From Convolutriloba macropyga (Eukaryota), in NCBI RefSeq assembly GCF_964194025.1, contig NC_134478.1, forward strand, positions 56,420,001 through 56,484,000: a stretch of DNA of 64,000 nucleotides, given 5' to 3'. Below the pieces are notes generated by a model. The model was not told the origin of the DNA, did not search any database, and saw only the letters and a program-made list of their open reading frames with translations. Shown in pieces: positions 15,960-49,293 of the stretch (its first letter is position 1; each line of letters begins with the position of its first letter). A program made the translations under genes and the position numbers.

Positions 15960-16630
15960 TTAAACATGCAAAATAGCGTTTTTATGCATTTTGAAAACGT
16001 TTAATGACACAAAAATCGCCATTGCCAAAATAGTCACTGACCGAAAAGCTGTCATTGCCAAAGAGTCAATGACCAAAAAGATACCTATGTCACAAAGGTC
16101 ATTGATTGAGTACCAGCGGATGCAAAAATAGGTCATTGACCGGAAAGCTGCCTATGACCGAAAAGCTTCCTGTGCCAAAAGGGTCCACAACCGAAAAACA
16201 GCGGATGCCAAAATAGGTCAATGTTTGAAAGTTTGTCTATAAGAAACAAGTCGACCACGGAAAAATTTATTAGATGAAAATAGTTTTCGAATGACATGTG
16301 TTGATGTATCACGGATATTGACAAAATAGAGATTCTCTAAGTAATGTCCAATTGACGATTTGAAATCGAAGATTGAAGTTTGGCTAGATTGTAATAGGGC
16401 GGGGACAACCTTTTGCGTGCCGTTTTTAAATTCTCAATATGGTTTGTTGCGATTCTTTTAATCGGAATATTTTTTGGCAACTTTTTTGCGTGACCAATTT
16501 TTTAATCGATCTTTTCCTTCATTTTTGCTTTTTTTGCTGGATCTCAGTCTCATGCAGATTTTAAAGAACAGAAGTGTTTTCAACTAAATCATCTGTTGCA
16601 AATTGTTTTTTTTAGATCAAATGCTGAATT
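15960..16630 (-). repeat. GA-tract element cassettes R3 (short GGTCA(A/T)TGAC subrepeats) and R2, inverted copies
   Basis: 15960-16380 is the reverse complement of 43640-44070. 16440-16630 is the reverse complement of ~48085-48270. Confidence 0.75.
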
Positions 16631-16675
16631 GGTTTGACAATTAGTTCTTTTTTTGGCGTTTTACACTCGAAGTGT

Positions 16676-18530
16676 GGTCGTTTCTCTTTTTTTTCTATAT
16701 TTTTGCTCTTTCTATCTTTTTCTCTTTCTTTATTTTCCCTCTTTATTTTTTTGCCCTTTTCACTGCTTTTCCCTCCCGCTTTTCTCTTTCTGTTCTGTCT
16801 GTCTTTTCTGACTCAACTCTCTTGCTTTTGTCTTTCCTTTCTGGTTTTTCTTTCCTCTGGTTCCCTCTTTCTCTTTCTTTTGTTCCTCTCTTCTGAGTTT
16901 CTTCTCCTTCTTTTTTTCCTTTTCTTTCTTTTTTCTCTTTCGTTCCTCTCTTTCGTTTCTCTTATTCGTTCCTCTTTTTTCTTTCTCTTTACTTCTGAAT
17001 TTCTTTTCTCTAGCTTTTCTCTTTATTTTCTCCTCTTTGTTCCTACTTTTTTTCTCTAATTCGTTTTACTGTTCTGTTTCACTTCTTATCTCTTGTTCGT
17101 TTCTCTCTTTTCTGTTTTTCTCATCTTTTTCTGTTTGTTTTACCTTCTCCCCTTCTGTTCTCTTTCTATACTTTCTTTTCTCTTCTTTTTCGTTTCTTTT
17201 GCTATTCTTTCTTTTCTGTATCCCGGTCCGCCCTTTCTTTTCTCTCTTTTTCTCTCTCTTTCTTTTCTCTTTCTTTTTCGTTCTTCTGCCTTTTTTTCAT
17301 TCTTTTTTCGTTGTTTCTGTCCTCTCTTCCGTTTATCTTTAGTTTCTCCTTCTTTTGGCTTTGTTTTTTTTCTCTGTTCTTTTCCTCTTTACTGCCTGTC
17401 TTTTCTCTTTTGCTTTTCTCTCTTTCTTTTCTCTCTTGCTTTCCTCTCTTTTTTCGGTCTTTTGTTTCTGTCTTTTCTCCTTCTTCTGTGTCTTTCTCTC
17501 TCTCTTCTTTCTTTCTCTCTTTCGCCTGCTCTCGCTCTCTCTTTCTCTTTCTTCTCTTCTTATTTCTTTTCGTGCGTCTCTATTTCCTTTCTTCTTTTCT
17601 GGATTTGTTTTCTCTTTCTTTAGCATTTTTTGTTTATTTTTCGTTTCTTCGTCTTTTTTTCTTTCTCTATTTTTCTGTTTTGCTTTTCTCACTTTCTTTT
17701 TTTGTCCTTTTCCGGTCTTTTTCTCTCTTTTTTCCCCTTGGTTTTCTCTTTTCTGTTTTTTCTTTTGTCTTTTTTTCGGTCTTTCTTCTCTCTTTCTATT
17801 TTTTCTCTTTCTTCTGCCTTTTCTCTCCTTCTTCCTATTTTCTCGTTTCTCTCTTGGTTTTCTGTCTCTGTATGTCATGTCTCTTACTTTTGTTCTTTCT
17901 CTTTCATTCTTTTCAAATGTTTCTGCCCTTCTTTTTCTGGTTTTTTCTCTTTCGGTCTTTTCCTTCTTTTCTTTCCTTTCGTTTCTGTTTTTTCTCTCTT
18001 TTCTGTATTTTTTCTCTCCGTTTCTGACTCGCCTTTTTGTCTTTCGTTTCTGTCTTCCTTTTCTCTCTTTTTTCCTCTTTCGTTTTTTAAATCATTTTTC
18101 TCTTACTTTTTTCTTGACTTTATCTCTTGATTTTCTTTTTCTTTTCTGTTTTTCTTTCCCCTGCTGATTTTTCATTCCTCTGCTGATTTTTTTTCCAGTC
18201 ATTCGTTTCATTCTTCCTTTTCCCCCCTCTTTTCGCTCTTTCTTTTTTTTTGTTTTTTTATCCTTCATTCTTTCATCTCGTGTTTTTCCCTTTCTCTAGC
18301 TTTTCCGTTCGAATCTATCTTTTCTGTCTATCTTTTTTTTTCTTTTTTGTCTCCATATCTCTTTTTTTATCAATTCTTTGTCTCTGTCTTTCTTTATCTT
18401 TCTTTGTTTTCTCCCTTTCTTTTCTCTTCCATTATCTCTTTTTTCTCCTTTCTGTTCTTCTGTCTTTGTCTCTTTCTTCTTCCTTTTGTCTCTTTCGTCT
18501 CCCGCTCTTTGCTTTTCTTTTTCTCGTTTT
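16676..18530 (-). repeat. Polypyrimidine (+)/polypurine (-) low-complexity tract, ~1.85 kb
   Basis: Almost entirely C/T on the + strand, with recurrent words TTTTCTCT, TTCTGTCT, TTTCGTTT, TCTTGCTTT. Confidence 0.95.
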
Positions 18531-19087
18531 TAATAGTCGCGTCAGCAATTCCAGGCGGCTATTATTGGGCTCCTAATTTTTTTATTTCGTCTAAAAGATT
18601 TTTGTTTCAACTTACCCTGACTTCTTGGAATTGACTTTTTCAAAGACTTCTGTGACTTCAACTGCTTTGCAGTTAAAATTTTTGTTCGTGGTGTCGTTTC
18701 TGCTTTTAGGTCAATTGCGTGACTCATCTCACAAAAAATTGACTTCTGAACCCAATTATGGAACTTTAAATTTTATGAACATTTACTAATTAAAGGTCAA
18801 TAGTGTGCATCTAAGTAGAGCCAAACTTATATGCCCTAATTCCTGAGAAATGGAGTCTTGAGTTTTGATATCGAATATTAATTTTGAAAAAGCTCCATAG
18901 AGGCTTTTTCCTTGTAGAGCAATTGTGTCTGATAAAAAAGACAGTCCGAATCTAACCCAAAAAGTCTAGTGGTCTATGGAAAAGCTGGTGGTGGATCTGC
19001 CGATCTTGCTTCTTTAGTTTTTTCAATTCAAGGTAGGCCACTAGCGTCTATTGCCGCTATTTGCCGGCAATCTGCCGGCTATGTTTG

Positions 19088-19412
19088 TTTTTCTCATCCT
19101 CTTCTGTCCGTCTGTTTTTTCCTTCTCGATTTCTTTTCTTTTTCATTGCTCTTTTCTCTTTCGGTTCTCTGTCCTTTTTTCTGTTTTCTGTCTTTCTGTC
19201 CTTTTCTCTCTGGCTTTACTGTTTTTTTTGTTCCTTTCTTTCGTCTTTTGTTTGTTTGTTTTTGTCTGTTTTTTCTGTTTTCATATCTTGTTTTCTCTCT
19301 TTCTCTTCTGTGTTTCTTTTCTCCTTTTTTTCTTTTCTCTGTCCTTCCTGTTGTTATCCTGCCGTTCTGTACGGTCTTTATTCTGTCTTCTCTCATTTCT
19401 ACTTTTTTCTCG
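19088..19412 (-). repeat. Polypyrimidine (+) tract, ~0.33 kb
   Basis: Same vocabulary as above. Bounded by GGCAATCTGCCGGCTATGTTTG (cassette R1 end) and by cassette L. Confidence 0.85.
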
Positions 19413-19414
19413 CT

Positions 19415-19745
19415 TACGCATGTTCAAGCTCCTCATCTTCGAATGTTTTAACGCTCCTTAAACATGAAGCGTAACGTTTTACGTGCGGTACGCTATGCCA
19501 CTATGTAGAAGTTCGTTATCTGTACATGTCTGAGTGCCCCTTAAATATGCAACATAGCAAAGCCAAAAAGTTGTTGAACAAAAAATTGCTTGTACTTGGG
19601 GGTAATGTACTAAACCAACCACCTCCGTAACGTAATACCTATGACTATTGAACGAGAGGCATGGGTTTCAGCCCGGGTTGGTACAAATAAAATCTTAGTT
19701 TTTTTTTTAATGAATTTCCTATGATGCTTTTGCGGGCCTGCTAGT
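19415..19745 (-). repeat. GA-tract element cassette L, inverted copy
   Basis: Reverse complement of 36878-37225 and 44320-44630 (e.g. ACTAGCAGGCCCGCAAAA, ATAGGTATTACGTT, TGTACAGATAAC, CATGTTTAAGGAGCG). Confidence 0.85.
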
Positions 19746-19769
19746 TTATGTACAGTTTGCACACTTTTT

Positions 19770-20070
19770 TTCAAAGCGGTAAATTTATATAATTTCACAG
19801 ACAATTTCAGCGGTGAAATTATGTAATTTCACCGCTACCAGGCGATAAAGTTTTTTTTTCACCGCATTCACCGCCTGATTTATGTAATTTCACCGTATTC
19901 ACCAATAATCTTACATAATTTTGCGTTGAATGGCGGTGACACCTCGACCCGAGCACGGGTCGAGGAAAAATTGGAAAAATATGTAAGATAAGCGGTGAAA
20001 AGTTGTTTTTTTTTTCACCGCAAATTTCGTACATATTTTTGCGGTGAAATTATGTAATAGTTCGGTAATT
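19770..20070. repeat. GCGGTGAA/TTCACCGC-rich repeat with a perfect internal hairpin
   Basis: Many copies of the motif in both orientations, with hairpin CCTCGACCCG-AGCA-CGGGTCGAGG at 19942-19965. The same motif family occurs at ~12350-12750 and 33701-35290. Confidence 0.65.
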
Positions 20071-20138
20071 TAGAAACAACCTGGGAAACAAAAAAAGGTG
20101 TTCATTTGTTCATAATGTTGATTTGATATGGTCTTCAG

Positions 20139-20292
20139 CCGCCAGTTCTGTCTGTTGCGCTTCTATTCCCGTCAGAATTTTTCGGAGCGTCAACAGCACT
20201 GGACAGACGTGATGGACATCCAGTCACTTGCCAAAATGGTCTACAGTTGGTTCAACTGGTATTCCTTCAAACCATGGGACATCAACGGCTAG
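20139..20292 (+). CDS. Secreted peptide gene A, exon 3, terminal (RQFCLLRFYSRQNFSERQQHWTDVMDIQSLAKMVYSWFNWYSFKPWDING*)
   Basis: Acceptor TCTTCAG at 20138; phase 2 matches exon 2 (AG+C=Ser). FCLLRFYS and NWYSF are identical to gene B but encoded by different synonymous codons. Stop TAG at 20290-20292, ATTAAA at 20328. Confidence 0.82.
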
Positions 20293-22195
20293 TGTACCCC
20301 TCTCTGCCCAAATTTAACCCTCGACTTATTAAATAGACTACATCAAAAATCTAGTAGATGGGGTGGGGTTGGGGGGTCAATACTGACTATAATACGCGCT
20401 TATGCACTCTATTTGAGGTCGAGATTAATTTTTATCATGGGTCCACGATGGTAATCTCATGACAATTTTCGGCTGATTATGGTCTTTTCTTGAGTCGAGG
20501 CACATAGGCCTGTATGTTTGTTCAGTTTTCATGTGTAACCTTCAATCAGCATCACTACTGATTCAGGACATTTTCAGAGTAACATCAATGTTCAGTACTG
20601 ACGATTCAGGAACATTTAAGAATAATTTACTTTAGCAAAGAATCTCAATCAGGTGTTCACTGAGTCTCTCTCTAAACCAGAGGAAAATTCAAAAGGAATT
20701 TCTGAATTAACTCTGAATAAAAAATCAGTAATTGTTAAGTGACTCTGCTTGAAATCACTGAGAACTTCTGGCGTTTTTCGAGAACCGCGAAGTGGTTCGA
20801 GATATTAAGTCAGAATTTCGAAGAGACTTCTGCAGAGTCACGTAACCATGCTTAAAACACGAATCGCGCACGTTTTAAAATGAAGAAAGTCAACGAAATT
20901 CAACTTCTGGCTAAGTAGCAACTTCTGGCATTTTGACTTCTGGCACTGCTGACTTTCGGCATTTTAAAATGCGCACGTGAGTGTTTTAAGGAGAATTTAC
21001 GCTGTTAAGCACGTTCGCGCAGAACAAAGAATTTGACGAAAATGGTTCTTCTTATTTTTTCCCTGTGTTCCGTTCTATCCAAATCCTTACTTGTTCAAGT
21101 TTCAGTTCCGTTTATTCCCACCAAATTTGCAAATAGTCAATTGCTTCCCGGATTTCCCGAATTAGCCACCCAGTGCTTTTCAGTACTTAACCAGTGTAAA
21201 TCCCGGACTGTTTTTAAAGTACTTTTTACTGGTCTATTTAATGATCATGTCAAAATTTAGATGGGTCAGTCTAATTTTCAGAGTTAATTTTTTACTAAGA
21301 TTATATCGTAATCATAATATACATACAATTGGTTTTCACTATTACTACCCTGGTTGAGTTGAGAAGGTTGGAGGGGGGGGGGGGGTGAAGTTCATCAGCT
21401 TTGTTTATCAAAATAGCAGAGTTAAATTTGCTTTACCAACTGAAGAATAAAGACCCAGGTTGAGGGTTGACGTCAAAGACGGAAAGTCGATATATCGAGG
21501 CCCAAATGAACGCACAAAGGGTGGGGGGCATGCGTTCCAACTTATATAGTCTGGATACACAGAAGATTGCACAAAAGTGGACATAAACGACAACAGGGCC
21601 GTCTGGAAAAACACTTTTTTCCGTCTGGGAAGGTTCGGTCATAGACTCTTTCCGTCTGGAACCTCCAACTGGGGAACGGCAGAGCAGAAAGAGGACTAGC
21701 TCATAGTTTTTGCTCCTCGGCGCACACTAGAAAAATTTAAGGAAACAAAAGATTAACTAAACAGTGACCTGGCTTATTATTTTTAGTTATATATGGACTG
21801 AAATTTTGGGAAATTACAAAGTCTGAATGAAAAGTGCTGAAAGAACTACATTTTAACTCAAAATCATCTAATATATGAGTAAATGATAAAGCAAGAAATG
21901 TTTCTAGTTATTGCAGAAATGAAATGACTGCGTTATAATTTCGTTTTGGTAACCTTTATGTATACTTTGGAACTGGCTTCCGAAAATTTGTTGAAAACTT
22001 AACAAAATAGAGTTAAATTTAAAGAAGAGTGAAGAGATAAGTTTACTATCGTTTTTTTGTCTTGGCATGCTGCTGAAGAAGTTTGTTTAAAACTGACTGG
22101 TTCAGTACTAATTTTCAACGATATACTTGTTTTGTGATGTTTCGCTATTGAAATACACTACTGGGTGATTCCGGGTTTTTGTAAATGAATTTTTT

Positions 22196-23470
22196 GTGAA
22201 GATAAATTCCACTGTAAGTGATAGTTTTAGCCTGACACCTGGAATATCTCAAGGGAGCGTAATTATTCTCTTTCTCTTTCTCATAAACGTCAGCCATTTG
22301 CCTCAAATTAAAGCCCAGTTCTCACAGTTCGCTGACAATTTAGCCCTCTACTATAGGTCACAATCCCCCAAAATAATTCAAAAACATCTTCAATCATCAC
22401 TGAATAGTCTAATTGATTGCTGTGACTCACTAAAATTCAAAATAAACCCAGATAAAACTCCTCAAAGAAAGAATCTTCTCTTGAATTCAATTTAAAAGGA
22501 GTATCCATTAAAAGGACCCAATCGATAAATTTTTTAGGTATAATTTTCACTCCACACCTCAAAAGGAATAACCATTGCATAGATTTAATACTAAGAGCGA
22601 CAAGCATGCTTTTTTTTACTCTGGAAATTGAGTAACCTAAACGTTAACGAAGAAAGTCTAATTTGGTTTACAAAGCATGAGTCCGACCCCTTTTTCTGTA
22701 CTCAAACGCTTGCTGGCTGGATCAATCACAGGGCCTGGTCAATAAAATACAAAACGTGCAAAACAGGGCTCTATGAATTTGCCTTGGAAAAACAAGATGG
22801 TACTAGTTTCAAAAACTCGGTGATTCCGGGTTTTTGTAAACACATTTTTTGTGACGATAAATTCCACTGTCTGTGATAGGGTCAGCCTGACACCTGGAAT
22901 ACCTCAAGGGAGCGTAATTATTCTCACTCTCTTTCTCATATACGTCAGCCATTTGCCTCAAATTAAAGCCCAGTTCTCACAGTTCGCTGACAACTTTGCC
23001 CTCTACTATAGGTCACAATCCCCCAAAATAGTTCAAAAACATCTTCAATCATCACTGAACAGTGTAATTGATTGGTGTGACTCACTAAAATTCAAAATAA
23101 ACCCAGATAAAACTCCTCAAAGAAAGAATCTTCTCTTGAATTCAATTTAAAAGGAGTATCCATTAAAAGGACCCAATCGATAAATTTTTTAGGTATAATT
23201 TTCACTCCACACCTCAAAAGGAATAACCATTGCATAGATTTAATACTAAGAGCGACAAGCATGCTTTTTTTACTCTGGAAATTGAGTAACCTAAACGTTA
23301 ACGAAGAAAGTCTAATTTGGTTTACAAAGCATGGGTCCGACCCCTTTTTCTGTACTCAAACGCTTGCTGGCTGGATCAATCACAGGGCCTGGTCAATAAA
23401 ATACAAAACGTGCAAAACAGGACTCTATGAATTTGCCTTGGAAAAACAAGATGGTACTAGTTTCAAAAAC
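22196..23470 (+). pseudogene. Two tandem degenerate non-LTR (LINE) reverse-transcriptase C-terminal fragments
   Basis: GIPQGSVI..LFLIYVSHLPQ....SQFADNFALY corresponds to RT motifs GVPQGS..P.LF..Y..D.P and (Y/F)ADD, with the catalytic DD changed to DN. A KFLGIIF-like motif follows. Stops and frameshifts are present. Confidence 0.85.
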
Positions 23471-23945
23471 TCTACGAAGAGGCAAACATAAAGTCAGTCG
23501 AGGAAATGCAGATTAAGTTAGTCAACTAGTATTTTCAAAGGTCAATAAAACGCAACATACTGTCTGTAACGGAGTTGATATACAAGAAACGAAAGTGCCC
23601 GCTCAACGCTTGCAAAAGCACTCTTCACTATCTCCATTACTAAAAATTCTAGCCGCATGCAGCATAGACTAGTGGCTAAAACGACTGCTTAATGTACTGA
23701 TCAACCAAACAAAATGAGGATCAATCCCATATCAATTCCGGAAAATCAAAATCAAAGAACACAGTCCTGGAAACAACAGAAATGGGCTCAACGACAAAAG
23801 AAAAGAGAGAACTTAGAACACAAAAAGGAAAACTAAGGAAGAACAGGAAAAAAGAGTCCAACACCAGCAGCTTTATGCTTATTTCATTGAGGCGTTCCCT
23901 CCATCCAATAGATTTCCAACAACTTTATAACGTAAAGGAGGAAAG

Positions 23946-24040
23946 TGCCGCAGTGGTCAACACACGCGTGGAAGAATTAACTGAAGAACGAACTTTTTCC
24001 CCCAACTGCGGTTCGAGTCCAGCTGAAATACATTTCAGCT
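23946..24040 (+). mobile_element. tRNA-derived SINE-like head (Pol III A/B boxes)
   Basis: A-box-like TGCCGCAGTGG at 23946, B box GGTTCGAGTCC at 24010-24020, then hairpin AGCTGAAAT-AC-ATTTCAGCT. No convincing cloverleaf. Confidence 0.5.
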
Positions 24041-25308
24041 TTCTTTATTTTTTTCTGCTATACTACAAGAAATACAATATGAAAAGCAATAGAACACTCA
24101 GACATGTTAAGAGTATTCGGCCAGCCGCTCACCTAGTCAATTGGGAGTCAAATACAGCTGATTCTTTGTCATCTTCCATAATAAAGTCCATATTATTCTG
24201 TTGTTTTCATCTGTCCATCCAGCCACTTCCCTAGTCAATTTGGGGCTGAACAGATTACAGCTGTCATCAATATCTCTACGCGTAATTATTGTCCAACAGT
24301 TGCGCCTTCTTTCGATGCCTTTCATTTCTAATTTCTTTGTGATTATTTTACTCCTCACTCCACTGATTTAAAAAAACATCTCTTAGATTTAAAAAAACAT
24401 CTCTTAGATTTAAAAAGAAGAAACGAAAACCTTCACTATTGTGCTGCGCGTGGTTTAGTTTCACTGGTTTAATGGTTTAGGTTAGCGTAGCATTTTTTTA
24501 AAACAATTTCTTATTTTTGTCAATTTTTTAATGCTTTTTCTAGTCAGAAACAACGCTTTTCTTTTATTTGTCTCGCTCCTTTTATTCTAAACTTAACAGT
24601 CCTTTTTTTCTCTCCTCAATTTGATTTCTACATTGTTGCAGGGTTATTTGAAAACATTGCACGTGATCTAAGCCCCAGCTTTAATTCATCAAATGGAAAG
24701 TTATTTTATTTTATTGAAAAGCTGAATTTATGTAGCAGCGTACATGTCAATTAGCGCGGGTCAATTAGCGCTAAGAGAACATCAGAATTGGGCGCTTCGG
24801 TTCGAAACCGTTCAAATAAGTTTGTCGATCTCCGTTTTAATTTCGCGACGATTTGGACTTTGAAAGATCGAAGCATTAAAACGAAAAACTGCAGCTACAG
24901 AAGTCAACTTAGTGCAGTGAACAATTACCTAGAAGAACCAGAACATCATCACCAGCCGCTTCGAGGCCCACCCACACCCATCGACCTTTTTATTTCATTG
25001 AATTCAAGTTTATTTTATTGTTTTAGTTATCATACTTACCGGAAGAAATTGTAACACCCCCTTTCACACAATCTCCACGAGGCTAGCCAAGGAACCGTGC
25101 CATTACCATTTGAATACGTCAAGTTCAGCAGCAGAAGTCCTTCATGGTACTTGAAGTGGTTGAGTGCATCTGAGGCAGAGGAAGTTGTTTTTACAGTTAC
25201 AGAGAACATTCAGTCTGTACTAGAACTACTCAAATTCATTTTTAAAAAAAAAACTCCAACTCTTGCTACTGTATATAAATTCTTTTACGTCTGGTTGTAC
25301 ATAAATTG

Positions 25309-25324
25309 TATATATATACATATA

Positions 25325-25377
<53 letters not shown>
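25309..25377. repeat. (TA)n microsatellite at the unit 1/unit 2 junction
   Basis: Seen directly. Confidence 0.95.
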
Positions 25378-25380
<3 letters not shown>

Positions 25381-26397
25381 CCACCCAGTGCTTTTCAGTA
25401 CTTAACCAGTGTAAATCCTGGACTGTTTTTAAAGTACTTTTTTCACTGGTCTTTTTAATGATTGTCAAAATTTAGACGGGTCAGTCTAATTTTCAGAGTT
25501 AATTTTTTTATTAAGATTATATCGTAATCATAATATACATACAATTGGTTTTCACTATTACTACCCTGGTTGAGTTGAGAAGGTTGGGGGAGAGTAAGTT
25601 CATCAGCTTTGTTTATCAAAATAGCAGAGTTATTTTTGCGTTACCAACTGAAGAACAAAGACCCAGTTTGAGGGTTGACGTCACAGACGGAATGTCGATA
25701 TATCGAGACCCAAATGAAAGCGCAAAGGGGGGGGGGCGCATGCGTTCCAACTTATATAGTCTTGATACACAGAAGTTTGCACAAAAGTGGACATGAACGA
25801 CAACAGGGCCGTCTGGAAATACACTTTCCGTCTGGGAAGGTTCGGTCATAGACACTTTCCGTCTCGAACCTCCGGCATGGGAACGGCAGAGCAGATAGAC
25901 AACTAGCTCATAGCTTTTGCTCCACGGCGCACACTAGAAAAATTTAAGGAAACAAAAGATTAACTAGACAGTGATCTGGCTTATTTTTAGTTATATATGG
26001 ACTGAAATTTTGGGAAGTTACAAAGTCTGAATGAAAAGTGCTGAAAGAACTACATTTTATTTCAAAATCATCTAATAAACGAGTAAATGATCAAGCGAGA
26101 AATGTTTCGAGTTATTGCAGAAATGAAATGACTGCGTTATTATTTCGTTTTGGTAACCTTTATGTATACTTTGGAACTGGCTTCCGAAAATGTGTTGAAA
26201 ACTTAACAAAAAAGAGTCAATTTTAAAGAAGAGTGAAGAGCTAAGTTTATCGTTTTTTTGTCTTGGCATGTTGCTGAAGAAGTATGTTTAAAACTTACTG
26301 GTTCAGTACTGATTTTCAACGATATACTGGTTTTGTGATGTTTCGCTACTGAAATACACTACTTGGTGATTCCGGGTTTTTGTAAACACATTTTTTG

Positions 26398-27481: not shown

Positions 27482-27577
27482 TGCCGCAGTAGTCAACACA
27501 AGCGTGGAAGAATTAACGGAAGAACAAACTTTTTCCTCCGAATGTGGTTCGAGTCCAGCTGAAATACCTTTCAGCTT
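27482..27577 (+). mobile_element. tRNA-derived SINE-like head (unit 2 copy)
   Basis: Homologue of 23946-24040; B box GGTTCGAGTCC retained. Confidence 0.45.
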
Positions 27578-31780: not shown

Positions 31781-31844
31781 GAACCTCCCCTAAGTGGGGC
31801 AAAGCCAAGATGGTGGAAAACATGTTTCGTTTGAATTCATTTTA

Positions 31845-36768: not shown

Positions 36769-36877
36769 TTTCATTTTATATATCATAATTTATTTGCTGC
36801 AATGGAAGTTCAGCCGATTTAACTCCAATGTGAAGTTTTTGTTACTTTTTTAAAGCACTGATGGCGTTAAAATGATA

Positions 36878-37225: not shown

Positions 37226-40200
37226 AAAAGAGAAAATAAAGAAAGGAAAGAGAAAAGACAGAGGAAAGAGAGAAAACGAACGCAGAAAAAGAGAACAGGA
37301 AGAGATGAACAAAAAAGAGAAACGGAGAGAAAACAGAAAAAAAACAGAACAGAAGAGAAAAGACAGAGAAACGAAACACAAAAAAGACAAATGAAAGTGG
37401 GAAAAGCGAAAAGGAAACGAAAAAAAAAAGAAAATCAAGACAAAGGCAAAAAAGAGTGAATGAGTAAAGAAAAAGAGAAAAGAAATCGAGAAACAGAAGA
37501 CAGAAATGAAAAAAAAAGCAATAAAAAAGAGAAAAGCAACAGAGAAAAAAGAGAAAAGGAGAGAAGACAGAAAAAAAGAAATGCAGAAAAAAAGAGCAGG
37601 AAAAGAGAGAAGAAATAGAAAAACAAAAGAGAAAAGACACAGATAAGCAGAAAAGAAAAGAAGAAAAAGGCAAAGAAAAGAAGAGAGAAGAAAGAGAAAG
37701 TAGAGAAAAAAGACAGGAAAAACAGAGAAGAAACCAAACAGAAAAAGAGAAAGAAACAAAAGATAGAAGAAAAAGGAAGGCAAAAGAAAAAGAAGAGAAA
37801 AGAGAGAGAAAATAAGAAACAACAGAAAAAGAAAAGCAGAAAAGAAGAACAGAAAAATAAGAGGAGAGAAAAAGAAGGAGACAAGAGAGACGAAAACGAC
37901 AGAGAACAAAGAGAAAAGCAAGACAGAAAACAGAGGGAGAGAAGAAAGAGAAGAAAGGCAGAAAAAAAGAAACGCAAAAGAAAACAAAAATAGAAAGGAA
38001 AAAGAAAAGAACAAAAACCTAAAGAAAAAACGAAAGAGAGGAACTAATGAGAGAAGAAGGAGAAAGAGAGGCAAAAAGAACAGAAGAGAAAAAGAGAAAA
38101 GAACGAAATAATGAAAAAAAAGAAACAAAAAAGAGAAATGCAGAAAAAAGAATAGAAAAAAAGGAAACGAAGGATAAAGAAGAAAGAGAAAAGAAAGAAA
38201 AGGCAGCAGAAACTCAGAACAGAAGGAGAAAAGCAAGAGAAGGAAAAAACGCAAAAGGAAAGCGAAAAGAACAAAAAACTGAAGAAAAAAACGAAAGAAC
38301 AAAAGAGAAGGATTAGAAAGAAAGGAAAAAAATTGAAAAATAGCAAAGAAAAAAAAAAGAAACTAAAGAGAGAAGAAAGGCAGCAGAAAGAAGAACAGAA
38401 AAGAACAGAAAGGAATGAGAAAAAGAGAAAAGAAAGCCAAAAGAAAGAAAGATGCAATACAGAAGAGAGACAGAAAAGAAAGCGAAAGTAACGAGAGAGA
38501 GGAGACAAAAAAGACACAAAAAACAGAAAAAAGAGAAGAGACAAACTGAAAAAATACAAAGAAGATAAGAAGAGAAAACAACGCGAGAAAAGCAAATCCA
38601 AAAAGAAGGAGAAAAGAAAAAGAAGAGAAAAGCGAGATACAAATGGAGAGAAAAAAGACAAAAGAAAGAGAAAAAGAAACAAAACAGAGAAACAAGAGCG
38701 AAACGAAAAATAGAGAACGAAGAGAAAAGCAAGAAGGTTAAAAAGCAGAGGAAAGGAAGGAAAAAAAGAAAAACATGAAGGAGAGCGAGAAAAAAGAAGG
38801 AGATACAAGAAAGGCAGAAGAGAAAAAAGAGAACAAAAAAAGAAAGAAAGAAAAGAAAAAAAAGAAAGAGAGAAGAGAGGAAAGAGAGAAAAGCTAGCAA
38901 AATGGCAGAGAAGAAAGACAGAAAATAAAGAGAAAAAGAAATGATAAAGAGACAGAAATGAAAGATAGACAAAAAAGAGGAGAAAAGAAAGAAAGACAGA
39001 AGAAACTCAGAAGAGAAAGTGAAAAGCAAGAGAAAGAAGAAACGGAAAGGAAAGCGAACAGAACAAAAATCTGAAAAAAACGGAAGAACAAAAGAGAAGG
39101 ATTAGAAAGAAAGGCGACAAAAAAGATTAGAAAAAGAAAAACAAAGAAGCTAAAGAGAGAAGAAAGGCAGCAGAAAGGAGAACAGAAAAGAAAAAAGAAA
39201 CGAAAGAGAAAGAGAAAAGAAGAGAAAATAAACAGATCAAGAGAAAGACACACAGGAAAGAAAAAAGAAAGCAAAAAATCAAAAGGCAGAAGAAAAGCAG
39301 AAAAAAGGAGAACAGAAAGGAGAGCGACAAAAAAAGGAGACAAAAGAAAGGCAGAAGAGAAAAAAATCAAAAAAGAGACAAAAGACAGAAAAGAAAGAAA
39401 AGCAAAAGAGAAAAGAAAGGAAAGATAGAAAACCAAGAGAGAAAGGCACAGAGAAAAGAGAGAAAAGAAAGAGAAAAAGAAACGATACAGAGAAAAGAGA
39501 AAGAAACGAAAGATTGATAAAGAAGAAAGAAAAGGCAGAAGAAACTCAGAACAGAGAGAAAAGCAAAAGAAAGAAAAAACGAAAGCGAAAGCCAAAAGAA
39601 AGAAAGATGCACTCAAGAAGAGAGACAGAAAAGAAAGCGAAAGGAACGAGAACAGAAAGCGAAAGGAGAGAGAGAGAGAGAGAGGAGAGAAAAAAGACAG
39701 AAAAGAGAGAAGACAGAAACTTGAAAAAACACAAAGAAGATATGGAGAGAAAACGCGAGAAAAGCAAATCAGAAAAGAAAAGAAAAAGAAGAGAAAAGCA
39801 AGATACCAATGGAGAAAAAAAGACAAAAGAAAGAGAAAAAGAAACAATACAGAGAACAGAGAACGAAACGAACGATAGAGAGCGAAGAGGAAAGCAAGAA
39901 AGTCAAAAAGTAGAAGAAAGGCAGAAAAAAGAGAAAAACAGAAAGGAGAGCGAGAAAAAAGGAGATAAAAGAAAGGCAGAAGAGAACAAAAAGGAGAGAA
40001 AGAAAGAAGGCAGAAAAGAAAGAAAAGCAAGAGAAAAACTAGAGAGAAAGGGAGAGAAAAAAGACAGAAAATAAAGTGAAAAAGAAACGATACAGAGAAA
40101 AGAGACAGAAAGGAAAGAGAAAGAGGAGAAAAGAAAGAAAAGACAGAAGAAACTCAGAATAGAAAGAGAAAAGCAAGAGAAAGAAAAAAACGGAAAGGAA

Positions 40201-43200
40201 AGCGAAAAGAACAAAAAACTGAAGAAAAAACGGAATAGAAGTACACAATAGAGAAGGATTTGAAATAAAGGCAAAAAAATGAATAGAAGAAACAAAAAAC
40301 AAAACAAACGGGAGAAGAAAAGCAGAAAGAAGAACAGAAAAGAAGAAAGAAACAAAAGAGAGAAGAAAAGAAGAGAAAAGAAAGAGATCAAGAGAAAGAC
40401 AGAAAGGAAAGAGATCAAGAGAAAGACAGAAAGGAAAGAGAAAAGAAAGCGACAAGAAAGAAAGAAGCGAAAGAGAATACAGAGAAAGAGAGAGGAAAGA
40501 AAAAAGACAAAAAAAAACAAAAAAAGAGAAGACAGAAACCTAAAAAAATACAAAGAAGGTAGAAAAAACAAAGTCAGAAAAGCAAATCAGAAAAGGAGAA
40601 AAGAAAACAAAGAGAAAAGCAGGATACAAATGGTGAGAAAAAAGACAGAAAAGAAAGAAAAAACAATACAGAAAAGAGAACAAAACGAAAGAGAAAGAAG
40701 AGAAAAGCAAGAAAACAGAAAGCAGAAAGGCAGAAAAAAGGAGAAAAACAGAAAGAGATAAAAGAAAGGCAGAAGAATACAACAACGAAAACAGAAAAAG
40801 ACACAAAAGACAGAAAGAAAGAAAAGGCAGAAAAGAAGGACAGGAAAAAAAGAAAGCAACAGAAAGACAGAAAAGAAAGAAAGAAGCAAGAGAAGAGAGA
40901 GAAAAATGAGAAGGAATGAGAAACTGAAGCGAGAAACGAGAGAGAGAGAGAAAAGCACGACGGAAAAGCAAGAGGTATACAAAAGAGAGAAACGAAAGAT
41001 GAGAAAAGACAGAGAGTAGAAAACGGAAAAAAAGAATAGAAATAGGAAAGAAAGAAAAAAAGAGAGAAAAGAAAGACAGAAAAGCGAGAGATAAACGAAA
41101 GAGAGAAAAGATAGAAGACAAAGGACAGACAGAGGAAAACAGGAAAAAAAGATTAGGAGAAAAAAAGAAAAAGAATAGAGAAAAGAAAGACAACAGAGAA
41201 CAAAGCAACAAAGGAAGGGAAAAAAGAAACGAGAAACTGAAGAGCAGCTAAGGAGGAACGGAAGAGAAAAAAGAATGAGAAAAAGAAAGATAGATAAAAA
41301 GAACAGAAAAGAAAGAAAGAAATATAGAAAAGAAAAAGACAAAAAAAATAGAAGACAGAAAAGAAATACAGAGAAAAGAAATAAAAAATAAAGAGAAAGG
41401 GGGAGAGAAAAGACTTAAAGAGAGAAAACAGATACAGAAAAAAGAAAAACAGAAAGAGAAAAGATATACAGAAAAATACAAAAGAAAGAGAAAAGCGAAA
41501 GAGAAAAAGCTGAAAAACGGAGAGAAAATAGAAAGAGAAAAGAAAGACAGAAAAGAAAGAGACAATAGAATTAAAAAAAAGACAGATAAAAGAGAGAAAA
41601 GACAGAAACGAAAGAAAGAAAAGACAGACAAATCAAAAGACAGAAGAGAAACAAAAAACAGAGAAAATAAAGAGAGAAAAAACGGTAGAGAAGAAAAACA
41701 GAAAAAAAAGAGACGAAAGACAGAAAAGAAAGAGAAAAAGCAAGAGAGAAAAGAAAGAGAGAAAAGCAGGAGAGAAAAGAAAGAAACGAAAGAAAAGACG
41801 GGCAGAAAAGAAGGACAGAAAAAAAGAGGAAAGAGAATAAAGAAAGCCAGGAAAGGCAGACAGTAAAAAAAAGAGAAACGAGAGAAAAGCGAGAGATAAA
41901 CGAAAGAGAAGAAAGAAAGAAGAGAAGACACAGACAGAAGAAAACAGAGAACGAACCACTAGAAAAGAAAAGCAAAAGAGAAAACAGAGAGGAAAAAGAT
42001 ACGAGAAACCAAAGAGAAGCGGAAGAGGAACAAAGAGAAAAAAGAATGAGAAAAAGAAAAACAAAGAAACAGACAAAAGAAAGAGAAAAAACAGAGAAAG
42101 GAAAGAAAGAAAAGAAAAATGAAAATACAGAAAAGAAAAAGAAAGAAAATAAAGAAAGAAAGAAAGAAATAAAGAGAGAAAAGGAAAAAAACGAAAGAGA
42201 AAATAAAGGCAGAAAAGAAGAACAGAAAAAAAGAGGAGTAAGAAAAAAAAGACAAACAAAAGACAAAAGAGACAGACAGGAAATACAGAAAAGAGAGAGA
42301 AAAGCAAGAGATAAACGAAAGAGAGAAAAGAAAGAAGAGAACAGACAGACAGAAGAAAAGAGAAAAAGCAAATAGAAAGAGAAAAACAAACAGAAGGGAG
42401 AAAAGAAAGACGGAAACGAAAGTCAGAAAAGAAAGCGAGAAAAGAAAGACGGAAGAGAAAAAACAAAAGGAGGGAAAAAAGACAAAAAAGACAGACAGGA
42501 AAAACAGAAAAGAGAAAGAAAAGCAAGAGAGAAAAGCAAGAGATAATCGAAAGAAGAGAATAGACAGACAGACGAAAACAAAAAACGAATTGAAAGAAGA
42601 AAGAAACAGAAGGGAGAAAAAGACAGAAAAGAAAGAGAAAAGCAAGAGAGAAAAAAAAGACAGAGACAAAACAGAGGAAGGAACGACTGAAAAGAACGAC
42701 AGAAAAGCAAAAGAGAAATACTAAGGAAAAAAGACACGAGAAACTAAAGAGAAGCGGAAAAGGAACAAGAAAAACGAATCAGAAAATGAAAGACAGATAA
42801 AAAGAACAGAAAACCAAGAGAGATAGAGAGAAAAAAGAAAGATAGAAAAGAAAAAGACAAAAGAGAGAAAATACAGAAAAGAAAGAAAGGAAAGCCAAAG
42901 AGAGGGGTGAAAAGAAAAAGTGAAAAATGAAATACAGAAAGAAAAAAACGAGAGAGAAAAGCAAGAGAAGAAAGACAGAAAAAAGCTACAGAAAAAAGCA
43001 CGACAGAAAAGAAAAGCAAAAAAGAAAAACAGAAAGGAAAAAAGACAAGAACAACTAAAGAGAAGACAATAGAGAGACAGACGAAAAGAACAAAAAATCG
43101 AATAGAGAAAGAAAAGAAAGAAACAAGAGATGAAAAGACAGAAACGAAAAACAGAAAAAGGAGAGAAAAGCATTAGAGACAAAAAAGACAGAAAAAAAGA

Positions 43201-43525
43201 GAAAAGAACGAGACAACTGAGAAAAGAACGACTGAAAAAAAAGATAAAAGAAAAAGAGAAGAAGAGAAAAGAAAAGAATACGAAAAACTAAAGACAAGCG
43301 GAAGAGGAACAAAGAGAAAAAGAATGAGAAAAAGGAAGACAGATAAAAAGAACAGAAAACAAAAAGAGAGAAATACAAAAAAGACAGAAAAGGAATACAG
43401 AAAAGAAAGAGGAAAACGAAAGAGGGTTGAGAAAATTGAGCGAAAGAGAAAAGAAATACTGAAAGAAAAAGAACAACGAAAGAGAGAAAAGATACAGAAA
43501 AAAGACACAAGAAAGAGAAAAGAAA
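37226..43525 (+). repeat. Polypurine low-complexity tract, ~6.3 kb, with higher-order internal duplications
   Basis: Mostly A/G, sparse C, rare T. Recurrent words GAGAAAAGCAAGAGA, AGACAGAAAA, AAGGCAGAA, AAACGAAA, ATACAGAA. Confidence 0.95.
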
Positions 43526-43639
43526 TTTCAACAATCTGTTGAGAATTTAAAAACGCTACACAAAATCTTGACCGTATTGCATTTCCATCTAAGTGATTCA
43601 ATTTTCTTTATAATTTTTTCATCATTTAAATGGACAATT

Positions 43640-44070
43640 TTTCATCTTCGATTTCATTTCGGACTTTTGCTTAAAGAATATTTATTCTGTCAATATCTGT
43701 GATGCATCTCACATGTCATTCAAGGACTGTTTTCGTGTGACACATTTTTCTGCGATTTAAAAAATTTTTGTACGCAGGTTTTCAGTCATTAACCTATTTT
43801 TGCATCCACGGCTAATAATTCATTGACCTTTACGTCATAAGTAGCTTTTAAGTCATTCACCTATTTTTGCATCCACAATTTTTCGGTCGTTGACCTTTTT
43901 GGCATAGGCAGCTTTTCGGACATTGGCAACTTTTCGGTCAATGACCTATTTTTGCATCCACGGCTGATCAGTGATTGACCTTTACGGCTTAGGTAGCCTT
44001 TCGGTCAAAGAATATTCTGGCAATGGCAAGTTTTTGGTCATTGACTCTTTTTAAAATGCATGCAAAACAA
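43640..44070 (+). repeat. GA-tract element cassette R3 (GGTCA(A/T)TGACC...TTTTTGCATCC subrepeats)
   Basis: Inverse of 15960-16380. Related subrepeats also occur at ~48600-48790. Confidence 0.75.
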
Positions 44071-44135
44071 TATGCCGCATGGTGTTCAGTGGCTCTGTCA
44101 TCGTTGAATTAATAGATGCTTAAGAGCAAGGCAAT

Positions 44136-44199
44136 TAGCCTAGTGGTTTGCGAACGTTTTCATACCCTGATCGAACTCAACAGACCCTGGTTCGAGTCC
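44136..44199 (+). promoter_or_regulatory. Pol III type-2 promoter (tRNA/SINE-like A and B boxes)
   Basis: A box TAGCCTAGTGG (44136-44146) and B box GGTTCGAGTCC (44189-44199) both fit consensus, 42 nt apart. Confidence 0.6.
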
Positions 44200-44319
44200 A
44201 CCTCGCAGCGCTCAAAATGCATGCAAAACGGTAGGCTGCATGTTTAAGGGGCTTTAAAACATGTGAAGATTAGGAGCTTAAACGTGGTGACATAGCACTC
44301 GAGTTAGAATTAATATATA

Positions 44320-44630
44320 GACTAACAGGCCCGCAAAAGCATAACAAGATATTTAAAAGAATAGAAGTTTTAAAATTGATTTTTTTCTCGTACCACTTTG
44401 GGCTGGAACATATGCCACTCGTTCAACAGTCATAGGTATTACGTTACGTTACCGATGTGTTGGATTTAGTATATTACCCCCAAGTACCAGAAATTTTGTG
44501 TTCAATTTTTTTGGCTCTGATAATTTGCATATTTAACGAGCGCTAAAACTTGTACAGATAGCGAACTTCTACATGGTGGCTTAGCGTAACTCATTGAAAA
44601 CATACGTTAGGCTGCATGTGTGAGGAGCGT
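44320..44630 (+). repeat. GA-tract element cassette L, second + strand copy
   Basis: Homologous to 36878-37225. Confidence 0.85.
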
Positions 44631-47063
44631 AAAAAGAGATATGGAAGGACAAAACAGACAAAAAAAGAGGAATGTGAAAGAGGAGCATAAAAGAATGTGA
44701 AAAGAAATAAACGAAAAAATGAAAAGAGACAGAGGACAAAAGAGAAAAAAAGACTGAAAAGAAAGAGAGAAAAGCAAGATCAAAAAGGAGAGAAAAAAGA
44801 CAGAAAAATAAGACAAAATAGAGAGAAAAGAGAAAAAAGAGAAAAGACATAAAAGACAAATGAAAGGAGAAAAGAAAAACAAACGGAAAAAAAGAAAAGC
44901 AAGAGAAAAAAGAGAGACAGTGAAGAAAAAGACAATGGACAGAAAAGCGAGAGAAAAGAAAGAAAAATGAAGGACAGAAAAGAATGAGACAAAAGAGAAG
45001 TAAAAAAGAAAAGATAAAAGCAAGAGAAAAGTAAGAGACAAAAACAAGAGATGAAAGATAGAAGTAAAAAAGGCAGAAAAGAGAGAGAAGAGAAAAAGGG
45101 AAAAGAGAGAAACAAATGAGAACAGAAAGGAAGAGAAAAGAACAAGAGAAAGGTAAAAGAAAGATAGAAAACACAGAATTGAGAAACAGGAAAGAAAAAA
45201 AAGCAAGAGAAAAAGGAAAGAGAAAAGCAAGAGAGAAAAGAAAGACAGAGCAAAGCGAGAGAAACAGAGAAACAGTAGAGAAAAAAATGGACAGAAAAGG
45301 AAGAGAGAAAAGAAAGAAGCGAAAGAGAAAAAAGGAAACAAAAAACAAAAGACAAAAGAGAAAAAAGCAAAAAAGAAAAGAGAAAAGCTAGAGAGAAAAG
45401 GAGAGAAAAAGACACCAAAAGACAAAATAGAGAGAAAAGACGAAAAAGAGAAGACATAAACGACAAATGAAAGAGAAAAGAAAAACAAACGAAAAAAAAA
45501 GAAAAGCAAGAGAAAAAAGTAAAGAAAAAAGATGGACAGAAAAGGGAAAAGAGAGAGAAATGAAAGACAGAAAAAAAGACAAAATAGAGAAATAAAAAAA
45601 GAGAAAAACAAGAGAGAATTAAGAGAGAAAAGCAGGAGAAAAAGAGAGAGAAACAAGAGATGAAAGATAAAAGTGGCAGAAAAGAAAGAGGCAGAAAAGA
45701 AAGAGAAGAGAAAAAAGAAACAAATGAGAAAAGAAAGGAAGAGAAAAGAACAAGAGAAAGAGGTAAAATAAAGATAGAAAACACACAGAATTGAGAAACA
45801 GGTAAGAGAGAAAAGCAAGAGAAAAACGAAAGAGAAAAGCAAGAGAGAAAAGAAAGTCAGAAAATACAGAGCAAAGCGAGAGAAACAGAGAAAAAGTAGA
45901 GAAAAAAGGATGGACAGAAAAGGAAGAGAGAAAAGAAAGAGAAGCAAAAGAGAGAAAAGAAAGAGAAACGAAAGACAGAAAAGAAAAGAGACAAAAGAAA
46001 TGAAAAGCAAGAGAAAAGAGAAAAGACGAAAAAGCAAGAGAAACGGCAAAAAAGACAGAGAAAAGCTAGAGAAAAACAAAGGAAAAAGGAAAGAACAAGA
46101 AAAGGGAGGCAGGAGATAAAAGAGAGGCAGGAAGGAGAGAAAACGAATGCGAAAAAAGGCAGGAAAAAACCAAAAAAAAAAGAAAATAGAAAAGCAATAG
46201 AGGAAAGACAAAAACGAAATACAGAGAAGGTAAGAGAAAAAAAAGACAGAAGACAAAGAAAGGCAAGTCAGACCAAAAAGAACAGAAGAGAAGGAGAGAG
46301 ACAGAACAGAAAAAGACAAGAAACAAAAAGAGGCAGAAAAGACAAAGAGAGAAATTAGACAAAAGAAAGACAGAAACAAAAGACAGAGAAGAAAGAGAAA
46401 AGGAAGACCAAAATGACGGAAAAGCAAGCGAGAAATAAAGAGAGAAGCTAAGGAGAAACAAAAGAGAAAAAGGAGGAGAAAAATGAATGGCAGAAAAACA
46501 GAACAGAAAAAAAACAAGAAAAGCAGAAGAGCAAATCGAAAGGCAGAAAATAAAAAGAGAAAGAAAGTAAGCGAAAACGTAAAGAGTAAAAAGAGGAAAA
46601 GAACAGAAAAAAAGAGACTAAAGAGCAAAAAGAGAAGAGAACAACAAAAGAGAAAGAGACAACGAATGAGGCAGAAAAAAAGAACAGAAAGAGGAAACAA
46701 GAATAGCGGAAAAGAAAGAGCAAAGTAAGAGAGAAAAGGAAAACAGAACGGAAACAGCAAAGGACGACAAACTAAGGAGAAATGAAAGCGGAACGAAAGA
46801 AAAAAGATAAAAAGACTCAGAAAAAGAACGGCAGAAAAAAACAAGAGAAAAGGAAAGACATGTAAAATACAAAAAAAAACAAAACAGAAAAGAGGCAGAA
46901 CAGACGAACAGCAAAATTGAAAGAAATAAAAGAGAAACGAAAAGCAGAAAAGAGAGAAAAACAGGAAGACGAAAATTGGAAAGGATATGAAAGAGAGAAG
47001 AGCAAGAGAAAAAAGGAAAAGCGAGAGAAAATACAGAAAAGAAAGAAAAGCAAGACAAAAAAA
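44631..47063 (+). repeat. Polypurine tract, ~2.4 kb
   Basis: Same vocabulary as the 6.3-kb tract, with an internal ~610-bp duplication (~44800-45330 vs ~45420-45940). Confidence 0.95.
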
Positions 47064-47576
47064 TTCAAACATAGCTGGCAGATTGCCAGAGAATAGCCGC
47101 AATAGCTTCGTAGACCTGCAGTCTAAAAAAAAGTTAAAAGAACAGACCAAAAAAATTCGTCTTTTCATTCAAGGCTGATATGTTATATTTTGATAAAAAA
47201 TCTTTATAAGTTTTTGCTGCCTCTATAAGCTGCTCTCAAATAACCTTCATTTAGAGTGACACACACCCATTTGACCTTATCTCTTTGAATTAAAGTAAAT
47301 AGAAGTTAATTCAAAGTGAGGAAGTCATTTTTGAGAGTGGGATAGGTCAAGTGTGACCAAAACTTTAATCACAGCGACTGAACGAAAAAACTCGCTTCGC
47401 TAAGATCGAAAAATGACGTCACGCACGCATTTCAGTTGAAATTATATGAACGAATGAACAAAAAGCAGATTTGAAGGGGTTGTGACGTCATATGGAAGTA
47501 AAAAAATCCTTACAACGAAATAAAAAACCAAGAGAAGGCTAAAATAGCCCCAGCTATCTCTGTGCGGCTATTAAAA
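47064..47576 (+). repeat. GA-tract element cassettes R1+L2 (spacer between two tracts), with two TGACGTCA sites
   Basis: Begins TCAAACATAGCTGGCAGATTGCC. Inverse of 10062-10515, 19040-19087, 8541-8597 and 18527-18585. TGACGTCA at 47414 and 47483. Confidence 0.85.
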
Positions 47577-48075
47577 AGAAAAGAACAGGAAAATAAAGAC
47601 AGTAACGAAAGAGAAAAAAGAAATGAGCAAAAAGAAAGGCAGAAGAAAAGAACAGAAAAGAAAAAGACAGACGAAAGAGAAGAAAGACAGGAAAGAAATA
47701 CAGAAAGGAAGGAGAGAAAAGCAAGAGAGAAAAGGAGAAAGAGGGGCAAACTAAAGACAGAAACGAAAGAGAGGAACAAATATTTCAAAATTGATATAAA
47801 AGAAAGGCAAAAAAAAGACCGGAAAAAAGACAAAGAAAGAAAGACAGGAAAGAAATACAGAACAGAAAGAGAAAAGGCCGAGAAAAAAACAGAAAGGAGA
47901 GAAGAAACGAAATAAAACGAAGACAGAAAAAAATCATATTAAAGAGAAGCGAACAGAAAGCGAAACGCAAAAAGAGAAAAAATACAGAAGGGACAGAGAA
48001 AGGGAATAAACGAAAAAGCAAAACGAAAGAAAAGAGAGAAAAGCTCTTCCTTCGAGAGTACGAAAGAAAAATAGA
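47577..48075 (+). repeat. Polypurine tract, ~0.5 kb
   Basis: Same vocabulary; followed by cassette R2 (~48085-48270). Confidence 0.9.
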
Positions 48076-49293
48076 ATCAATTCTTTTCGCAGGCTAACTC
48101 TTCATTTGATCTAGAAAAAACCTGGCAACAAATGATGCAGTTAATTAAACTTCAGTTTAAAAACTTTCATGAGACAAAGATCAAGCAAAACCGAAAACAA
48201 ATGAAGATTGTTCAACAATATCATATCGTTCACACAGCAAATCGTTCTGATTAAAGCATCGCAACAATTTGTGTTCAGGAGAAGTTAAAGACTCTAAAGA
48301 AACTTAACGCCCGGTGGGTGCAACCTGTTTATCCCGTTTTTAAAGACAAAGTCAAATGGGCCAAAAAGAATCGGATGAAAAAGAATCGGAAGAAAAATCG
48401 CACGAAAAAGACCAACAGGACTAATATAATTGCTACAAACTTCGTTTGAGAGCATTTAAATAGAGTAGTTTAACCTCATATGCTGGCAACCAGCATATTG
48501 TCAATGGAATAACAAGAAATCATTGAAAGGCCAAAAATAGCAAAACCCTCTTTTTGGATCTATTTCTAATTGACATTTTTCGGTAAATAACTTCATAACT
48601 TCTTGCATCCCTGTTTTTTTTTGCGGCGCGTAAACCTTTTTGCAGCTGGATTATCGGTCATTGACTCTTTTTGCATTTAGGTTAATGACTTTTTGCATTT
48701 AGGTCAATGACTCTTTTGCAGTCTGCGCTTTTTCGGACATTGACCTTTTACGAGAGCAATTTTTTGGTCATTGACCTCTCACAATCTGCCCTCTTAACCA
48801 TGCTGCTCAACAGCTCTTAAACATGCTCTTCGATAGCTCTTAAACACGCTCTTCAGAGGCCTCTTAAACGTGCATTTTCGCCTTTCGTTAAACACGGTGC
48901 CTTATAAACTGTCATGCATTTAATATATAGGATAAGTGAGCAAGATGATAGCATCTTTTTTCATCTACGACCATCAAAAGTAGTTCAATCAAAATGATAT
49001 TGCTTACAGTTTGTTCAATTTGGTTTTATATTAGTTTTATTTCACAAAAAAACTGAAGTCCATTTGTTTACAATTAAATATCAGGTTTAAACCTTGCGTT
49101 TGTTTATCCGGTAAACAATTACAAACAAATTTTATAATAATTGGTTTCTGTCATTTTGTCCGAGAACTTTGACTCGTTCAATATTAGATTAAATTGATGA
49201 TGATGGCCTAATATTTTTCATCCACCGGCTTGAAGTAAACTTAAAATAGGCAAAATATTTTTTACCGATTGTTGTTTATGTTACCATTGAAAA

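Follow-up and report, generated by a model that had tools for sequence, protein, structure and literature searches.

Convolutriloba macropyga repeats with kilobase-scale purine/pyrimidine tracts are probably non-autonomous Helitrons

The DNA analysed here is a stretch of 64,000 nucleotides from Convolutriloba macropyga (assembly GCF_964194025.1, contig NC_134478.1, positions 56,420,001 to 56,484,000), hereafter called the window, and it carries three related repeat elements that we call A, B and C. Each consists of a conserved arm of ~0.33 kb, one or two tracts of 0.3–6.3 kb in which one strand is mostly purine, and a second conserved arm of ~0.8–0.9 kb (Table 1). A preliminary description had named the short arm cassette L and the tract-proximal parts of the long arms R2 and R3; these cassettes are in all probability the 3' and 5' arms of a high-copy, non-autonomous Helitron family of the canonical type, and the tract between them is templated cargo that is faithfully copied at transposition rather than made anew at each insertion.

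Comparison of the window with itself places copies of L at 36877, 44321 and, inverted, 19745, and matches an R3-like segment (43644–44322) to 15884–16373 in inverted orientation. Blocks of at least 85 per cent purine occupy 37201–43400, 44801–47000 and 47601–48000 and are mirrored by pyrimidine blocks at 16801–18400 and 19201–19400. The tract lengths given in the preliminary description (6.3 kb; 2.4 and 0.45 kb; 0.33 and 1.83 kb) stand as they were. Its element limits have to be redrawn: R2 and R3 cover no more than the tract-proximal portions of 0.8–0.9-kb arms, the true ends lie at 48932 and 15885, and 19745–36877, which had been included in a single element spanning 15960–48270, lies between elements and outside them.

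Table 1. Repeat elements of the window and their component parts.
Feature	Position	Strand	Remarks
Element A	36878–44321	−	complete, probable non-autonomous Helitron, 7.4 kb
3' arm of A (cassette L)	36878–37215	−	ends CTAG, then host T (on the + strand, A at 36877)
Tract of A	37216–43525	purine strand +	6.3 kb
5' arm of A (R3 and beyond)	43526–44321	−	
Element B	44322–48932	−	4.6 kb; divergent subfamily; abuts A head-to-tail
Tract 1 of B	44641–47064	+	2.4 kb
MITE-like cassette of B (R1 + L2)	47065–47585	+	inverted-repeat ends
Tract 2 of B	47586–48042	+	0.45 kb
5' arm of B (R2 and beyond)	48043–48932	−	terminus ...TAATATATAGGA, then T
Element C	15885–19744	+	subfamily of B; orientation opposite to B
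5' arm of C	15885–16690		
Tract of C, 5' side	16691–18524		
MITE-like cassette of C	18525–19085		
Tract of C, 3' side	19086–19419		
3' arm of C	19420–19744		
3' end of C	19744	+	CTAG, then T
Free-standing MITE-like cassette	10065–10512	−	85% identity to 47067–47527, inverted; no tract adjoining
Partial end of MITE-like cassette family	8541–8597		

The termini of the family are sharply defined. Read on the minus strand, element A extends from 5'-TCTATATATT to GCGGGCCTGCTAG-3', with a host A before it and a host T after it, and over the terminal ~30 nt the family reads 5' TCTATATATTAATTC... at one end and ...GCGGGCCTGCTAG at the other. The 5' start TCTATATATT, with its leading TC, is common to A and 10 of 11 other copies, B beginning with TCC and C with TCTAAATATT. 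On the plus strand the 5' arm of A terminates in ...TATATAGA; in 10 of 11 copies the corresponding edge is ...TTAATATATAGA with a T next to it, beyond which the flanking sequences diverge. The 3' terminus is CTAG, which fits CTRR, in 29 of 30 copies and in C, and this edge appears on the plus strand as A|CTAGCAGGCCCGC in 29 of 30 copies, the upstream flanks being unrelated to one another and A/T-ended. In B the 3' signal is TTAG, not CTAG (44322–44325), and the next T is the first base of the TC of A. A host T flanks 30 of 30 copies and a host A flanks 10 of 11.

Two copies, one on contig C7 and one at C4:27370791, lie in a host repeat with uninterrupted paralogues among the fetched loci, so that filled and empty sites can be compared. 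The empty site of the C4 copy reads AAGCAAAAA|TTTTGCAT, and in the filled site the element is inserted exactly at that point with no base duplicated or lost; the C7 copy gave the same result. The target in both is A|T, and the target duplications that the preliminary description proposed to look for at the outer ends are absent from both.

By the published definition (PMC4067079), canonical Helitrons start with TC at the 5' end, finish with CTRR at the 3' end, insert between A and T and duplicate no target sequence, and all four defining features are present in this family. It is assigned to canonical Helitrons because its ends (TC and CTAG), its A|T target and its insertion without target duplication fit that definition. 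Likeness to the canonical non-autonomous elements extends further, to the lack of coding capacity, the formation of head-to-tail composites and the high copy number (PMC4067079). The preliminary description knew of no named family with this design; the ends, the target and the missing target duplication are those of canonical Helitrons, and the layout has been published for Helentrons.

Several observations weigh against this assignment. Canonical Helitrons carry a 3' palindrome of 16–20 nt about 11 bp from the end (PMC4067079), and the present family has no clear palindrome of that length: in its place is an invariant but imperfect 10-nt GC-rich sequence, GCGGGCCTGC, 4 nt from the end, and the 3' ends fold no better than their shuffles (z = −0.7 and +1.0). 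A hairpin with a 12-bp stem (CATGTTTAAG..CTTAAACATG) is present in the 3' arm of A next to the tract, ~215–270 nt upstream of the 3' end. The base before the 5' TC of element C is G in place of A, and the first bases of B are TCC. The comparison of filled with empty sites covers only two copies, and it leaves the boundary ambiguous by 1 nt. The profile PF14214 (Helitron Rep) has 90 genome matches above its cut-off, and among ten 3.3-kb Rep loci an autonomous RepHel partner was not found, for none had similarity to either arm or carried a tract. The tract lengths, finally, come from one assembly.

The arms are abundant, and their association with the tract is regular. Genome-wide match counts throughout are first-look figures and hence lower bounds: at least 778 for the 3' arm (36877–37215; 40 were scored, at 89–100 per cent identity), at least 1166 for the last 241 bp of the 5' arm, and at least 142 for the R2-type arm. 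In 30 of 30 fetched loci the tract lies directly 3' of L with its polarity unchanged and with the L/tract junction at the identical base, and beyond the tract the ~0.8-kb 5' arm is kept, its edge also at a fixed base, in 9 of 10 complete copies. The sharp edges and the constant polarity of the purine strand noticed at first in the window are therefore properties of the family at large, and the idea of a mobile repeat with conserved ends around purine/pyrimidine tracts of variable length is borne out. Whole elements of family A measure 5.1–11.9 kb (20 paired coordinates of L and the 5' end), and the tract accounts for ~85 per cent of the element. Short versions of the family also occur in tandem, with L arms every ~1.4–2.8 kb at C12:9641874–9646434, and on C13:12535027–12542217 a cassette with an R2 arm is repeated every ~3.1 kb; these arrays are possibly Helitron-to-satellite transitions.

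Whether the tract travels with the element can be judged from closely related copies. The head-to-tail pair A+B has a paralogue on contig C2, with similarity running from 36874 to 48933 and unrelated flanks on either side; since the similarity ends at the outer limits of A+B, the 12-kb pair moved as a unit. (No empty site emerged for the composite in the window, whose downstream flank is unique and whose upstream flank matched nothing but a small unrelated repeat ending ~100 bp short of the junction.) The arms of the two composites differ by 1.5–2.3 per cent. When the tracts of A are aligned globally with cheap gap extension they show 1.9 per cent substitutions, equal to the arms, and 98 per cent identity where aligned. 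BLAST identities of 82 per cent for the young pair and ~71 per cent for others had suggested a hypermutable tract or one made de novo, and this candidate was rejected as an artefact of gap penalties.

The same holds among the young copies elsewhere in the genome. In the trio L035/L036/L039 the L arms are 98.5–98.8 per cent identical and the tracts 96.3–96.6 per cent identical and 97–98 per cent collinear, with tract lengths that differ by ~300 bp. Because young copies have tracts collinear at 96–98 per cent identity, the tract must be copied with the element and is not made anew. Older copies (L arms at 93–96 per cent identity) retain a fainter signal: their tract alignments score 1.3–1.8 times a block-shuffled null, they have 199–585 unique 18-mers in common (null, 76), only about half of them in collinear order. 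Across all copies the tract still aligns over its first ~130 bp and its last ~150 bp.

The interior of the tract is remodelled in place, by indels of the size expected of slippage together with larger duplications and deletions. Between the window and contig C2 the tract of A has undergone 70 indel events, 68 of them of 1–18 bp and two of 279 and 356 bp, at a density of 12.6 per kb in the tract versus 5.2 per kb in the arms (~2.4-fold, p = 0.0016). The C2 copy of the B tract holds internal duplications of ~1.9 kb and ~1.1 kb, one of which takes in a second copy of the internal cassette described below. Slippage or unequal exchange would be the probable cause of these changes in length. Of the modes of growth put forward in the preliminary description, slippage and unequal exchange thus agree with the indels and duplications, and iterative templated addition is at odds with the collinearity (96–98 per cent identity) of young tracts.

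In composition the tracts are nearly uniform. That of A has, on the plus strand, A.64, G.245, C.078 and T.035, and is cryptically simple without being periodic; across all tracts examined the values are A.62–.65, G.24–.26, C.075–.106 and T.03–.05. The cosine between 8-mer spectra is 0.93–0.96 within family A, 0.86 when A is compared with the long tracts of B and C, and 0.55–0.67 for the two short tracts, compared with 0.72–0.80 (long tracts) and 0.42–0.49 (short tracts) for Markov-1 surrogates. The program TRF finds weak periods of 9–13 nt (~56–62 per cent matches) and local duplications of 30–220 bp (62–84 per cent matches). A vocabulary of words held in common without a simple period, as first described, is what these spectra and weak periods amount to. 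The earlier suggestion of triplex or R-loop formation is weakened by the finding that purine runs in the 6.3-kb tract average 8.9 nt, with nine of at least 30 nt and the longest of 59 nt, and that G makes up only 25 per cent; because the runs break about every 9 nt, the potential for classical H-DNA or triplex is modest.

Constancy of this kind invites the thought that selection maintains the tract. The element might profit from a single-strand spacer or helicase track free of self-structure, or the host from a sequence, spread over about a thousand sites, that acts in replication, R-loop formation or chromatin. Such a role for the pyrimidine-strand tract as a selected functional part of the Helitron is improbable in our judgement, though it has attractions. 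Composition is nearly constant across subfamilies whose arms are only ~70 per cent alike, the polarity is fixed, and both single strands of the tract are, because of their base composition, essentially unstructured (−0.003 to −0.03 kcal/mol/nt versus −0.19 to −0.26 in control stretches). If this were so, a spacer or helicase track would confine folding in the rolling-circle intermediate to the terminal hairpin signals, and selection would account for the constancy of composition and word usage in subfamilies with arms that have drifted to ~70 per cent identity. Constant composition would, however, also result from an equilibrium of mutation and slippage, and inheritance alone accounts for the fixed polarity. 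No filter against pyrimidines is visible, since a purine stands opposite a pyrimidine in 50 of the 103 mismatches that separate young copies; tract length varies at least 10-fold, and the purine runs are broken every ~9 nt. Selection on the tract, whether for element or host, is accordingly an unlikely explanation.

Subfamily B/C differs in layout, its order being arm, tract 1, internal cassette, tract 2, arm, in agreement with the preliminary description. The cassette is ~520 bp long and resembles a miniature inverted-repeat transposable element (MITE), its inverted-repeat termini being CATAGCTGGCAGATTGCC... and ...GCGGCTATT. What were listed earlier as two separate cassettes, R1 and L2, are real sequences that prove to be the two ends of this single unit; the tract-free copy and the partial end also recorded then are both present in the window (Table 1). 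The MITE-like family has at least 4367 genome matches, and among the 40 best of them 16 have the cassette 316–1205 bp upstream of an R2-type arm in a shared orientation. Element C contains a diverged cassette (18525–19085) in the same relative place and orientation as in B. Because its place recurs in genome copies and in C, the cassette is an inherited part of subfamily B and not a private insertion. It separates tract segments that vary in length, tract 1 from 0.33 kb in C through 2.4 kb in B to ~4 kb at C4:858xxxx, and tract 2 from 0.32 to 1.83 kb.

The arms themselves are modular. The 5' arms hold tandem repeats of 33, 67 and 85 bp of the GGTCAATGACC-TATTTTTGCATCC type (43770–44060, 48630–48780 and 16020–16220), in numbers that vary among genome copies. 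The 5' arm of A also contains a tRNA-like piece (44080–44160, plus strand) with a perfect box A, TAGCCTAGTGG, and a box B, GGTTCGAGTCC, ~57 nt apart. It is kept in other copies, lies antisense to the Helitron and is not present in subfamily B/C; ARAGORN called 0 genes in it, and for this piece and the arms Rfam returned nothing at the gathering score nor at E ≤ 1. A hairpin module is found in the 5' arm of A as well, and the ~100 bp of the 3' arm that adjoin the tract (37120–37215; also 19419–19486) are a diverged version of the hairpin module at 44210–44320 (CATGTTTAAGG...CTTAAACATG). This arrangement of the sequence suggests that the element may have arisen from a short Helitron or from a head-to-tail pair, with the tract taking over the junction.

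The layout of flank, repeat array and flank in a fixed orientation is the design of the HINE elements (PMC7492417, PMC4067079), and it raises the question whether we are dealing with a non-autonomous Helentron of the HINE/DINE-1-like kind, copied as a rolling circle by a Helentron-type protein. In DINE-1/HINE elements a left flank, a repeat array and a right flank follow in one orientation (PMC4067079), and in the oyster Cg_HINE the orientation of the array is fixed to the flanks, its length is variable and some elements have two arrays in a row (PMC7492417). The modular design, fixed array orientation, variable length and occasional second array are all seen here, short microsatellites belong to the structure of those elements as well, and the weakness of the canonical 3' palindrome would suit a Helentron. 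Cg_HINE and DINE-1/HINE have subterminal inverted repeats and T-rich or TT targets, however, and their arrays consist of satellite-like monomers of ~140–180 bp or of short microsatellites, in contrast to the non-periodic purine/pyrimidine tracts of several kb described here. In element A the first 60 nt have no inverted exact match of at least 7 nt in the last 120 nt, the target at both empty sites is A|T, hence not the TT or T-rich target of Helentrons, and the ends are TC and CTAG. A Helentron origin is for these reasons quite unlikely, slightly more so than selection on the tract.

The size and nature of the cargo set the family apart from known systems. The present elements differ from canonical Helitrons in that ~85 per cent of each is a single strand-asymmetric, cryptically simple pyrimidine tract of 4–11 kb. 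Lepidopteran Helitron-like elements, reportedly treated by Coates et al. in 2010 (as cited in PMC4067079), are said to be associated with (GAAA)n microsatellites and, to go by the title, to disrupt or flank short ones; the link to a purine-rich simple repeat is alike, and here the tract is internal cargo of kb size. Intron 21 of the human PKD1 gene contains a 2.5-kb polypurine/polypyrimidine H-DNA tract. It has the same kb-scale strand asymmetry, and the present tracts differ in being interrupted about every 9 nt and dispersed in about a thousand transposon copies. Our search of the open-access literature, which did not extend to Dfam or Repbase, found no description of Helitrons with kb-scale purine/pyrimidine cargo. 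What is unusual here is the kind and the size of the array, not the class of the element.

Two further readings fare much worse. In the first, the element would be a retroposon resembling a short interspersed nuclear element (SINE), L being its body and the tract a giant A/G-rich 3' tail that each retrotransposition makes anew. The look of a head followed by an A-rich tail and the tRNA-like A and B boxes speak for it, yet the two empty sites show no target duplication, on which ground the SINE reading was rejected; after the supposed tail comes a 0.8-kb arm that is conserved and sharply ended, the tract is collinear between copies, and the tRNA-like piece is situated in the 5' arm rather than in L and is recognised by neither ARAGORN nor Rfam. 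We regard it as very improbable. Just as remote is the proposal that the tracts are products of faulty assembly or encode low-complexity protein rich in K, E and R: such DNA is hard to assemble and the purine strand has few stop codons, but there are no N gaps in or beside the tracts, independent loci hold collinear tracts at 96–98 per cent identity, and lengths divisible by three account for only 15 of the 70 indels, which led us to reject the coding reading.

The gaps in the window belong to a neighbouring repeat. A tandem repeat at 21161–30886 consists of about three units of ~3.5–4 kb at 91–96 per cent identity, the third without ~2.1 kb of internal sequence, and has a single open reading frame of at least 110 aa (23782–24234). 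Both N gaps (28825–28953 and 30887–31245) fall at unit ends of this repeat, which has a (TA)n run (25309–25377) at its intact junction. Since they lie in a separate tandem repeat, with over 5 kb between them and the nearest cassette or tract, the gaps leave the finding untouched. Just upstream of A, at 36640–36770, is a ~130-bp repeat with at least 1795 genome matches at 84–90 per cent identity, whose short inverted self-matches suggest that it may be another MITE. Elsewhere, 59722–61242 is a satellite-like tandem array of 175/349 bp in ~7 copies (~87–90 per cent identity), a large inverted duplication with nested arms lies within 51222–56416 (51222–51884 versus 56416–55753, 90 per cent), and 1427–4356 is a 67–78 per cent copy of 52217–54334.

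Taken as canonical-type Helitrons, the elements would be rolling-circle DNA transposons that need terminal signals only, a RepHel protein from another locus of the genome presumably mobilising them in trans. Each transposition would copy all that lies between 5'-TC and CTAG-3', including the kb-scale pyrimidine-strand tract. After insertion, the length and order of the tract would change in place, through indels, some small and of slippage type and others hundreds of bp long, and through tandem duplications at the kb scale, as the arms stay conserved; in B and C the MITE-like cassette marks two tract segments whose lengths vary independently. The head-to-tail A and B may have moved as a 12-kb composite by read-through of the altered 3' end of B.

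An apparently new modular element thereby becomes classifiable, as a canonical-type non-autonomous Helitron family at the confidence expressed above. At ~1000 copies of about 5–12 kb each, and given that the counts are first-look figures, the family would by rough reckoning contribute several Mb of strand-asymmetric purine/pyrimidine DNA to a genome of 1.18 Gb. Comparison of its young and old copies shows how Helitrons carry, transmit and remodel large low-complexity cargo, which is of relevance to genome assembly and repeat annotation and offers a natural system in which to measure the instability of cryptically simple DNA.

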